64,000 nucleotides of DNA from Mobula birostris (lineage: Eukaryota): assembly GCF_030028105.1 (NCBI RefSeq), contig NC_092384.1, forward strand, positions 3,143,665-3,207,664, given 5' to 3'. A program made the translations under genes and the position numbers. Under the pieces are notes generated by a model that saw only the letters and a list, made by a program, of their open reading frames with translations, made no database searches and had not been told where the DNA came from. Positions 1,126 to 2,351 of this stretch are shown piece after piece; the stretch's first letter is position 1; every line of letters starts with the position of its first letter.

Positions 1126-1428
1126 CTGTGCTGTAGTTGATGACGATGTAAGTGGCGAGAGCAGAAACCCGGAGGGTGACGTGAGATACCAGACAATTGT
1201 AGACTGTCCCGGTTGGCACAACCTGTGTCACTGACAATCTGCTGGAAGCTTCATATAGCCCATCCGAAGTGGAGTTGGTAACTGGCTTGTTGGTTGTAAT
1301 GTTGGTGCCATCTTTATACCAGGTGAAACTGATATCCATTGGGTAAAAGGGAGATGTAGTGCACAGAAGAGCCAAGGCTTCCGATTTCTCTGGATCTCCG
1401 GAGTAAATTTTCAATGGAGCTGGAGGAA
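1126..1428 (-). CDS. IgSF receptor copy A, C1-set domain exon
   Basis: Acceptor tttcttag|TT, donor ACAG|gtgaga, 303 nt, phase 1-1. Translation VPPAPLKIY...[21 protein letters not shown]...[10 protein letters not shown]...[10 protein letters not shown] carries the C1 motifs CxxxxFYP, WxK and YxCxVxH. Confidence 0.92.
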
Positions 1429-1840
1429 CTAAGAAACAGTGGAATAGATGGATGAATGGTTGTTTACGGTTAGTTGTATATTCTCGGCCATATCAGCGTT
1501 CGATACTAGTAACATAAAAGCCAAAAATTTAAGATTACTACGGCAGGAATTTAAATTGCAATGGAGGAAAATAGTTCTTGATAACTAACGGAGCAAATCG
1601 TCGAATATTTGGGATCAGGGGCGGCTGTAAAATTTAGGGCTCCAGAATTTAACGTTGAAATGAATGATGATGTCCAAATACCTTAGCCAGATTTTAATTA
1701 CTGTCGTTGAATACTCTTGTTTTACATAGTCAGCGCGTGCCGCTACAATTAGTACCGTTATTCTATTTAAGAGGCATTGTACAAAAGACAATTTCTCAGT
1801 CGCAAGTTCGCATCAACTGAATCGCTTCTAATGCACCTAC

Positions 1841-2161
1841 CCAACACAACTAAAGTCGACCCGGTTCCGTTGCCAATCATTGTGCCCTGATGGGTGATTG
1901 TACAATAATAGACTCCCGCATCTTGTAGACGCACGTTGACTATCTGCAGGAAGCCGCTGAATTTAGTACTGAAGCCGGTCAATTCTCTGGCGTCATGGTC
2001 TGGGTTGATGTAATTATTTTCTCCCTTTTTCCACCAATTTATGTCAACGCGGGGACCCTCCGGAAAGGAGGAAAGGGAACAGTCAAAGGAAATGTTTTCA
2101 CCCTTCAAGATGTTGGCGGTTTTAGGGAGTTGTGTTACGTTGACAGAAGATTCAACTGACC
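1841..2161 (-). CDS. IgSF receptor copy A, VJ-type V domain exon
   Basis: Acceptor aatttag|GG, donor TTGG|gtaggt, 321 nt, phase 1-1. It has the B-strand Cys (FDC), C-strand Trp, DAGVYYC and a J-like [10 protein letters not shown] in one exon. Confidence 0.95.
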
Positions 2162-2296
2162 CTAAATTAAAGAAAGACAATTCCGAATCAGTAAGAGACA
2201 TTATAAACAGCGTATACAATTGTAAAGACGAACTAGGACAAACATAAAGAGTTATTCAATAACTGTTTCATTCTGAAGAATGGGAAAGACATTTAC

Positions 2297-2351
2297 CCGT
2301 GAAGTATATCATCCAAAGAAGCAGACAGTGAGGTCCCACTCTGGCCAACAT
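2297..2351 (-). CDS. IgSF receptor copy A, leader (signal peptide) exon
   Basis: ATG at 2351 reads MLARVGPHCLLLWMIYFT-G, followed by donor gtaaat. The phase-1 end joins the V exon in frame, and the exon is conserved in copy B. Confidence 0.85.

Follow-up and report, generated by a model that had tools for sequence, protein, structure and literature searches.

The DNA considered here, referred to as the window, is a stretch of 64,000 nucleotides from the ray Mobula birostris (contig NC_092384.1, positions 3,143,665 to 3,207,664). Close to its start, on the minus strand, it carries the leader, V, and C1 exons of a non-rearranging gene of the antigen-receptor type. With a probability of about 0.8, the product of this gene is a type I membrane glycoprotein in which a signal peptide precedes a short V domain, whose G strand is J-like, and a single C1 domain, and in which a transmembrane helix leads to a cytoplasmic tail bearing two immunoreceptor tyrosine-based inhibitory motifs (ITIMs), and it would serve as an inhibitory receptor of the SIRP-like kind. 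Judged from the sequences, the gene is likely to be SIRP-like in build and function, with a germline V(J)-C1 ectodomain, an ITIM tail, and family partners that appear to be of an activating type. The diversity of the family to which it belongs arises by gene duplication and not by recombination.

Exons, domains, and public gene models

The coding part of the leader exon occupies positions 2297–2351 of the minus strand. It opens with an ATG at 2351 and comprises 18 codons and one further base, so that the peptide MLARVGPHCLLLWMIYFT is followed by the first base of a Gly codon. The donor site is ACGG/GTAAAT (the slash marks the exon boundary), in phase 1, with its GT at 2296–2295. The V exon (1841–2161, minus strand, 321 nt, phase 1 at both ends) encodes the whole V domain together with the J-like G strand. 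Its acceptor is TTTCTTTAATTTAG/GG and its donor is TTGG/GTAGGT. Between them runs a single uninterrupted frame that begins with SVESSVNVTQ, passes through DAGVYYC in strand F, and reaches the J-like strand NGTGSTLVV, which has the pattern G-x-G-S-x-L-x-V. In this strand, Asn stands at the position held by Phe or Trp in the J segments of immunoglobulins (Ig) and T-cell receptors (TCR). Three N-glycosylation sequons (NVT, NIS, and NGT) are present in the exon. The C1-set exon (1126–1428, minus strand, 303 nt) is likewise in phase 1 at both ends, with the acceptor CTGTTTCTTAG/TT and the donor ACAG/GTGAGA, the GT of which lies at 1125–1124. The splice sites of the three exons are canonical, and the three junctions are all in phase 1. 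A preliminary description of this DNA had proposed exactly such a series, consisting of a leader, a single V/J-like exon, and a C1-set exon, all in phase 1, and the exact coordinates on the minus strand and the canonical splice sites bear this out. No further exon was found in the 1.1 kb of the window beyond the C1 donor. The three exons very probably represent the 5′ half of an intact Mobula birostris gene, with the transmembrane and tail exons lying beyond the start of the window.

The remaining part of the protein can be read from public gene models. A word-index search led to a RefSeq “uncharacterized protein” of Mobula birostris (P0172; 209 aa, gene span of 15.3 kb, on the 86.2-Mb sequence of GCA_030028105.1). 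The model starts at a Met encoded at window positions 1339–1337, inside the C1 exon, and is identical to the exon in 72/72 residues up to the splice site. It then continues as TSITNDVMTSICALSGLVSILLVFLIAKRC, with the hydrophobic anchor MTSICALSGLVSILLVFLI and a tail of 111 residues. There is no charged residue in the transmembrane segment. Two tail motifs, VPYAAL and VTYAPI, fit the ITIM pattern, and the tail also contains TVYAQT, IVYHRE, and VIYSER. When the exons of the window are combined with the RefSeq model, the deduced full protein has approximately 364 residues. The model has neither the leader nor the V exon nor the first 29 in-frame codons of C1, which looks like an annotation truncation. 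On the practical side, this N-terminally truncated model is corrected by the leader and V exons at 2351–1841.

The orthologue in M. hypostoma (P0158; 397 aa, automatically named “tapasin-related protein-like”) displays the full order of leader, V, C1, transmembrane segment, and ITIM tail. Its leader, MLASVGPHCLHLWMIYFTG, matches the leader exon of the window, and its identity to the window exons is 91% for V and 87% for C1. Because orthologous proteins are conserved to this degree, the gene is not a chance open reading frame. The exon with the first ITIM (STSEAM..YAAL..RTVYAQ) occurs twice in tandem in P0158, at residues ~275–343, and once in the M. birostris model and in a second copy of the gene within the window, which is described in the last section. 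A Cys near the outer end of the transmembrane helix is kept in many members of the family (LISGCAGGGL, LIAGCAGGGL; MTSICALSG in the window gene). This residue could form an interchain disulfide or serve as an acylation site.

The domain types were assigned with Pfam. The V exon matched ig (3e-10), V-set (1e-8; 35.6 bits against a cut-off of 26), and I-set (2e-7), and Ig_3 was also above its cut-off. The C1 exon matched C1-set at 7e-13, with 49 bits against a cut-off of 21. Hatherley et al. in 2009 listed the hallmarks of C1-set domains, namely the motif (F/Y)(F/Y/H)P, the motif xVxH after the cysteine of strand F, and 13 residues between the Cys and the Trp (PMC2785349). The C1 exon has 3/3 of them: FYP, C-x-V-x-H (in the form CLVSH), and exactly 13 residues from the strand-B Cys to the strand-C Trp. 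Confident AlphaFold (AF2) models of both domains were built on family alignments, with a predicted local distance difference test (pLDDT) score of 91.7 for V and 88.5 for C1, and their structural neighbours were sought with Foldseek. The V model contains strands A, A′, B, C, a vestigial C′, D, E, F, and G, and is without C″; its G strand is broken by a bulge at G-x-G (98–100). Only 43 residues lie between the strand-C Trp and the strand-F Cys of the V exon. According to the model, the V domain is of the short kind seen in VNAR, NKp30, and I-set domains and is not a full nine-strand V.

The fold neighbours come from many families. For the V model, they include NCAM Ig1, shark VNAR, SIRP-alpha d1 (within the 10 best PDB fold matches), TCR V-alpha, NKp30, CD79b, CD8-beta, and Ig kappa V, at E values of 1e-8 to 1e-7, TM-scores of 0.69–0.80, and identities of at most 27%. 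The C1 model has C1-set neighbours only, that is, TAPBPL, SIRP-alpha d3, SIRP-beta-1, the alpha-2 and beta-2 domains of MHC class II, Ig kappa/lambda C, and B7-H6 IgC, and the highest TM-score (0.87) belongs to SIRP-alpha d3. For a two-domain model of the orthologue, the closest cluster in the ESM Atlas is “SIRBL”, a SIRP-beta-like cluster, with a TM-score of 0.83 by query. Sequence and profile rankings in the PDB were dominated by multi-domain chains with summed domain scores (titin, Robo, IgH), and they were not used for kinship. Both domains are approximately equally far from SIRP, NKp30, VNAR, TCR/Ig, MHC class II, and tapasin-related protein, with identities that do not exceed 27%.

Absence of rearrangement and the chondrichthyan family

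In the 64-kb window, the heptamer/spacer/nonamer pattern of a recombination signal sequence (RSS) had 0 matches, and a relaxed scan for RSS found nothing within the V exon. The only CACAGTG, a perfect heptamer at 1053–1059 of the plus strand, was considered as a candidate and rejected. It sits in the intron downstream of the C1 exon, has a 22-base spacer and a poor nonamer (6/9), and resembles a chance occurrence. The segment that corresponds to complementarity-determining region 3 (CDR3) is constant in length and nearly constant in sequence across Mobula, Hemitrygon, skates, Heterodontus, and catshark; it reads TIAHQGTIIGNGTGS in M. hypostoma, AIAHQGRMVGNGTGS in the stingray, TITRRGTLVGNGTGS in skates, TVTHRGKIVGNGTGS in the horn shark, and TVTHEGKTAGNGTGS in the catshark. 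Because the V domain and the J-like strand share an exon, no RSS is present, and the CDR3 equivalent is conserved across species, the gene is non-rearranging. This agrees with the preliminary description, both in the claim that the gene does not rearrange and in the claim that neither an intron nor an RSS separates V from J. The term “germline-joined” used there does not hold, since there is no sign that the V exon was ever split. Over 75 V domains of the family, conservation is greatest in the J-like strand (mean entropy of 1.16 bits), and variation peaks at the FG tip (2.82), with strand D (2.69) and then the BC loop (2.56) next. These segment entropies and the one-exon V indicate that diversity lies largely in the CDR-like loops and yet is germline-encoded by many genes.

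The relatives of the gene were collected by an exhaustive HMMER search of the V exon against 1.84 billion representative proteins, which gave 174 hits at E ≤ 1e-10. Besides giant multi-Ig proteins, the hits are proteins of 120–500 residues that match the whole V domain. All named family relatives are chondrichthyan, both the ~40 family-type hits among the best 150 HMMER V hits and the word-index hits, and no tetrapod SIRP occurs among the ~40. They come from rays and skates (Mobula, Hemitrygon, Hypanus, Amblyraja, and Leucoraja), from sharks (Scyliorhinus, Mustelus, Heterodontus, Heptranchias, Chiloscyllium, Hemiscyllium, Carcharodon, Cetorhinus, and Pristiophorus), and from the chimaera Callorhinchus. 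In total, more than 100 related models were recovered. In the profile search, family members scored 150–529 bits and the next candidate scored 34 bits; the word-index profile search at E 0.1 brought only three marginal additions (31–34 bits) and no outgroups. The expansion expected by the preliminary description, which spoke of an elasmobranch SIRP/NKp30-like family, is therefore real, with more than 100 models, but the family is not restricted to elasmobranchs, as Callorhinchus has it too.

Automatic annotation has named these proteins in many ways. SHPS-1/SIRP-alpha-like is the commonest name, and others are SIRP-beta-1-like, Ig lambda-1 light chain-like, tapasin-related-like, NCR3LG1-like, CD276, PD-L1-like, and MHC class II beta-like. 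Such inconsistency is expected where no characterised protein is the clear best match. With names that flip in this manner and fold neighbours of many families at equal distance, the earlier statement that the gene cannot be assigned to a named gene stands. The family is already in public annotation under inconsistent SIRP-like names, and the window gene is a further member of it rather than a new type of gene. A full-text literature search (PRARP; SIRP together with shark) found no description of a chondrichthyan SIRP-like family.

A census of 110 family models outlines the signalling types. In 40 of them, a transmembrane segment is combined with an ITIM or an immunoreceptor tyrosine-based switch motif (ITSM), and the order LTYAAL and then TEYAxI/V recurs. 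A charged transmembrane residue (mostly R/K, in a few cases D/E) is found in 22 models that have no ITIM/ITSM and are mostly short-tailed, and 27 models are without a transmembrane segment. As far as sequences can tell, a paired receptor family like SIRP alpha/beta/gamma has just this composition. Rays, sharks, and chimaeras thus carry a large SIRP-like V-C1 family that is actively duplicating and decaying and in which some members are inhibitory and others of an activating type.

A tree of 81 V-C1 ectodomains, all of them family members, was built with support values from the Shimodaira–Hasegawa-like approximate likelihood ratio test (SH-aLRT). In it, M. hypostoma, Hemitrygon, and the window gene form one group (SH-aLRT 99). 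This group is sister to skates (99), within an elasmobranch clade of 13 sequences (98), and the Callorhinchus genes fall outside that clade. The placement indicates that the window gene represents an old, conserved lineage and is not a recent oddity. In the skate Amblyraja radiata, one member of the family (P0006) has two nearly identical tandem C1 domains at residues 112–315, which points to a recent exon duplication. Its V-C1-C1 order reproduces the three-domain ectodomain of SIRP-alpha.

The function of the window gene can be outlined on the template of SIRP signalling, in which SIRP alpha/beta/gamma form a paired receptor family (PMC12975943). At its tip, the V domain would use its CDR1-like and CDR3-like loops to bind a ligand on another cell or on a microbe, and the C1 domain would act as a spacer. 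Upon engagement, Src-family kinases would phosphorylate the ITIM tyrosines. The phosphorylated ITIMs would then recruit phosphatases of the SHP-1/SHP-2 type and, in the manner of SIRP-alpha, damp activation of the leukocyte on which the receptor sits. In this outline, expression of the copy with its V exon, the ligand, the recruitment of phosphatases, and the cell type are inferred.

Kinship and rival explanations

Several features link the gene to SIRP. Both begin with a V-type domain that has a J-like G strand and the motif DxGxYxC, do not rearrange, and continue into a true C1-set domain. Both seem to belong to paired families, in which forms with ITIMs stand beside short-tailed forms with a basic transmembrane residue. 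The tail is also alike, with xxYAxL(D/N)L followed ~20 residues on by xxYA(S/Q/A)(I/V/T). The tail of SIRP-alpha contains ITYADL and then TEYASI, and the LTYAAL and TEYAxI/V of the family are close to it. Some points weigh against the reading of the gene as an inhibitory SIRP-like receptor. The window gene has one C1 domain, as C1 leads straight to the transmembrane segment in P0158 and P0172, whereas SIRP has two (V-C1-C1). The identity to SIRP domains is at most 27%, which is no higher than that to NKp30, VNAR, TCR/Ig, MHC class II, and TAPBPL. Pairs of an ITIM and an ITSM-like motif are common to many unrelated receptors, so the tail likeness to SIRP-alpha may be convergent, and TVYAQT in the tail is a non-canonical ITSM. 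Finally, the transmembrane and tail exons of this copy lie outside the window and are known from the RefSeq model P0172, which omits the leader and V, so that splicing from V to C1 in M. birostris is a prediction from the exons. The V domain of the window gene also differs from that of SIRP in the models, being shorter and without strand C″. Membership in the SIRP family proper is not shown: there is one C1 domain and not two, and kinship with SIRP was compared by fold and domain identity, the tree being one of family members.

Other receptors share part of this build. PRARP, reportedly described by Fu et al. in 2019 from bony vertebrates (J Immunol, cited in PMC10751288), is said to have a non-rearranging VJ exon, one C1 domain, a transmembrane segment, and an ITIM tail. 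This order would be the same as in the window gene, and PRARP may be the nearest described architecture. NKp30/NCR3 and VNAR resemble the gene in fold only, with a short V/I-type domain without C″ and a J-like G strand (TM-scores of 0.69–0.75, E values of 1e-8 to 1e-7). NKp30 differs in that it has no C1 domain and signals via a charged transmembrane residue (Arg), whereas the window gene has a C1 domain and an uncharged transmembrane segment. VNAR, for its part, is rearranged and sits on the constant domains of IgNAR. A further comparison concerns UrIg, a liver-secreted protein with three C domains, and UrIg2, which has nine to eleven C domains; both are elasmobranch genes with a split leader and a single VJ exon, and neither rearranges (PMC12227049).

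It is highly improbable that the window gene is itself a member of the UrIg/UrIg2 lineage. Both kinds of gene have a split leader, a single VJ exon, and then C1-type domains (PMC12227049), they do not rearrange, and they occur in cartilaginous fish; moreover, among PDB sequences UrIg2 (9dmx) ranked first for the C1 exon. That rank is explained by the summing of three weak domain matches (17–25 bits): against the three C domains of UrIg2, the C1 exon scored 24.6, 16.7, and 21.3 bits, no better than against IgH C domains, and UrIg2 was absent from the best 60 PDB hits of the V exon. UrIg and UrIg2 have no ITIMs and have three or nine to eleven C domains, against one C1 domain, a transmembrane segment, and ITIMs in the window gene. 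No relative was found that is named or built like UrIg. The domain count, the membrane anchor with its ITIM tail, and the weakness of the matches all speak against membership. A conventional Ig light-chain (IgL) or TCR minicluster joined in the germline has even less to recommend it. Sharks carry germline-joined clusters of the IgL/TCR type, the order of V, J-like strand, and C1 with a split leader would suit one, and some relatives are named “immunoglobulin lambda-1 light chain-like”. However, the protein runs on into a transmembrane segment and an ITIM tail, the V domain is without C″ and scores best against I-set domains of Robo, contactin, and NCAM and against VNAR, and Asn replaces the F/W of F/W-G-x-G. 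Rays, skates, and sharks share an FG loop of conserved length and sequence, the C1 domain shows no more than 27% identity to Ig kappa/lambda C, and the tree gives orthologue groups and not Ig clusters. Such a cluster is contradicted by the absence of RSS, the ITIM tail, and the conserved FG loop.

A V-C ligand of the B7/butyrophilin type, instead of a SIRP-type receptor, is very unlikely. This explanation draws on relatives automatically named NCR3LG1-like, CD276, and PD-L1-like, on the IgC domain of B7-H6 (NCR3LG1) among the fold neighbours of C1, and on butyrophilin clusters in the structure list of the Atlas. Against it, the window C1 has 3/3 of the C1 hallmarks, which d2 of CD80 is without (PMC2785349). 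The V domain keeps the G-x-G bulge and the J-like strand, the ITIM tails and the forms with a charged transmembrane segment follow the logic of receptors and not of B7 ligands, and the commonest automatic name is SIRP-like. The gene could also be silent or decaying in this copy, with the V exon and leader disused and the RefSeq start inside C1 as the consequence. P0172 does have neither leader nor V exon, and the neighbouring duplicate is clearly a pseudogene. Nevertheless, decay is unlikely in view of the three exons, which are all open, have canonical splice sites, and keep the conserved residues of the framework, of the short terminal branch in the tree (0.048), and of the full-length model of the M. 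hypostoma orthologue; moreover, low coverage often produces models that falsely start at an internal Met.

Non-rearranging genes that combine VJ with a true C1 domain are living relatives of the gene that was split by the RAG transposon. A proposal of 2009 counted SIRP among them (PMC2785349), and the current favoured candidates are UrIg and UrIg2, which are non-rearranging and found in sharks (PMC12227049). The preliminary description regarded the present gene as relevant to the ancestor before RAG; the link is no stronger than the SIRP argument of 2009 (PMC2785349), with UrIg/UrIg2 as the current candidates (PMC12227049). It is possible, if rather doubtful, that the chondrichthyan V-C1 family is a sister lineage or co-orthologue of the tetrapod SIRPs, of the PRARPs, or of both. 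If so, paired V(J)-C1 receptors of ITIM and activating types would already have existed in the ancestor of jawed vertebrates. The family would then join UrIg and UrIg2 as a third VJ-C1 lineage that does not rearrange, having kept a short, VNAR-like V domain without C″, and it would bear on the appearance of the exon that was invaded by RAG. The interest of the gene rests mainly on the relation of its family to the SIRP, PRARP, and UrIg genes, and the sequences collected here form a defined set for a tree on the jawed-vertebrate age of SIRP-type receptors.

The second copy and the rest of the window

The gene lies in one arm of a tandem segmental duplication. When the window was aligned with itself (blastn), positions 113–12000, which include this first copy, aligned with 40880–53532 at ~85–91% identity. 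The second copy is located 40.8 kb upstream of the first and can be traced through all exons on the minus strand. Its leader exon (42954–43008) is intact, and its V exon (42498–42818) is open, with 83% amino-acid identity to copy 1. The two V exons differ by 19 non-synonymous and 6 synonymous changes, and the ratio of non-synonymous to synonymous substitution rates (dN/dS) of ~0.9 fits relaxed constraint. Of the C1 exon, a remnant is left at 41925–42131. A deletion of 158 bp, equivalent to 1333–1490 of copy 1, took away the acceptor site together with 32 codons at the start of the exon, among them the codon for the strand-B cysteine, one of the two cysteines of the domain. The transmembrane exon (36465–36575) has an in-frame TGA at 36540–36538 in place of the Cys that its relatives keep near the outer end of the helix. 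It is followed by a cytoplasmic micro-exon (27439–27476), GTQKEEEISDQCL, and by the cytoplasmic exon with the first ITIM (26050–26148), in which the ITIM Tyr is changed to Asp (GAT at 26124–26122, AMMSDAALDL) and RTVYAQ is kept. The last exon (25505–25672) encodes the ITIM LTYTPI, then IVYHRE and VIYSER, and ends with the stop TAA at 25507–25505. Copy 2 is a pseudogene with three independent lesions, namely the C1 deletion, the TGA in the transmembrane exon, and the Tyr-to-Asp change in the ITIM. The window therefore offers a clean exon map of an intact copy beside a dated pseudogene.

Apart from the two copies, no other cellular gene was seen when 10 long open reading frames of the window were compared with Pfam, and 5/10 of them had no family match; the 64 kb show no synteny for the gene. 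The long frames outside the gene copies (7281–8159, 18075–19031, 39396–40919, 46331–47002, and 48753–49712) are retroelement remains of the long interspersed nuclear element (LINE)/CR1 type. Their matches are to the reverse transcriptase family RVT_1 (E 1e-33 to 5e-16) and to the endonuclease/exonuclease/phosphatase domain. A sub-threshold match of a window frame, which is GDSL-lipase-like, may represent a CR1-type ORF1.

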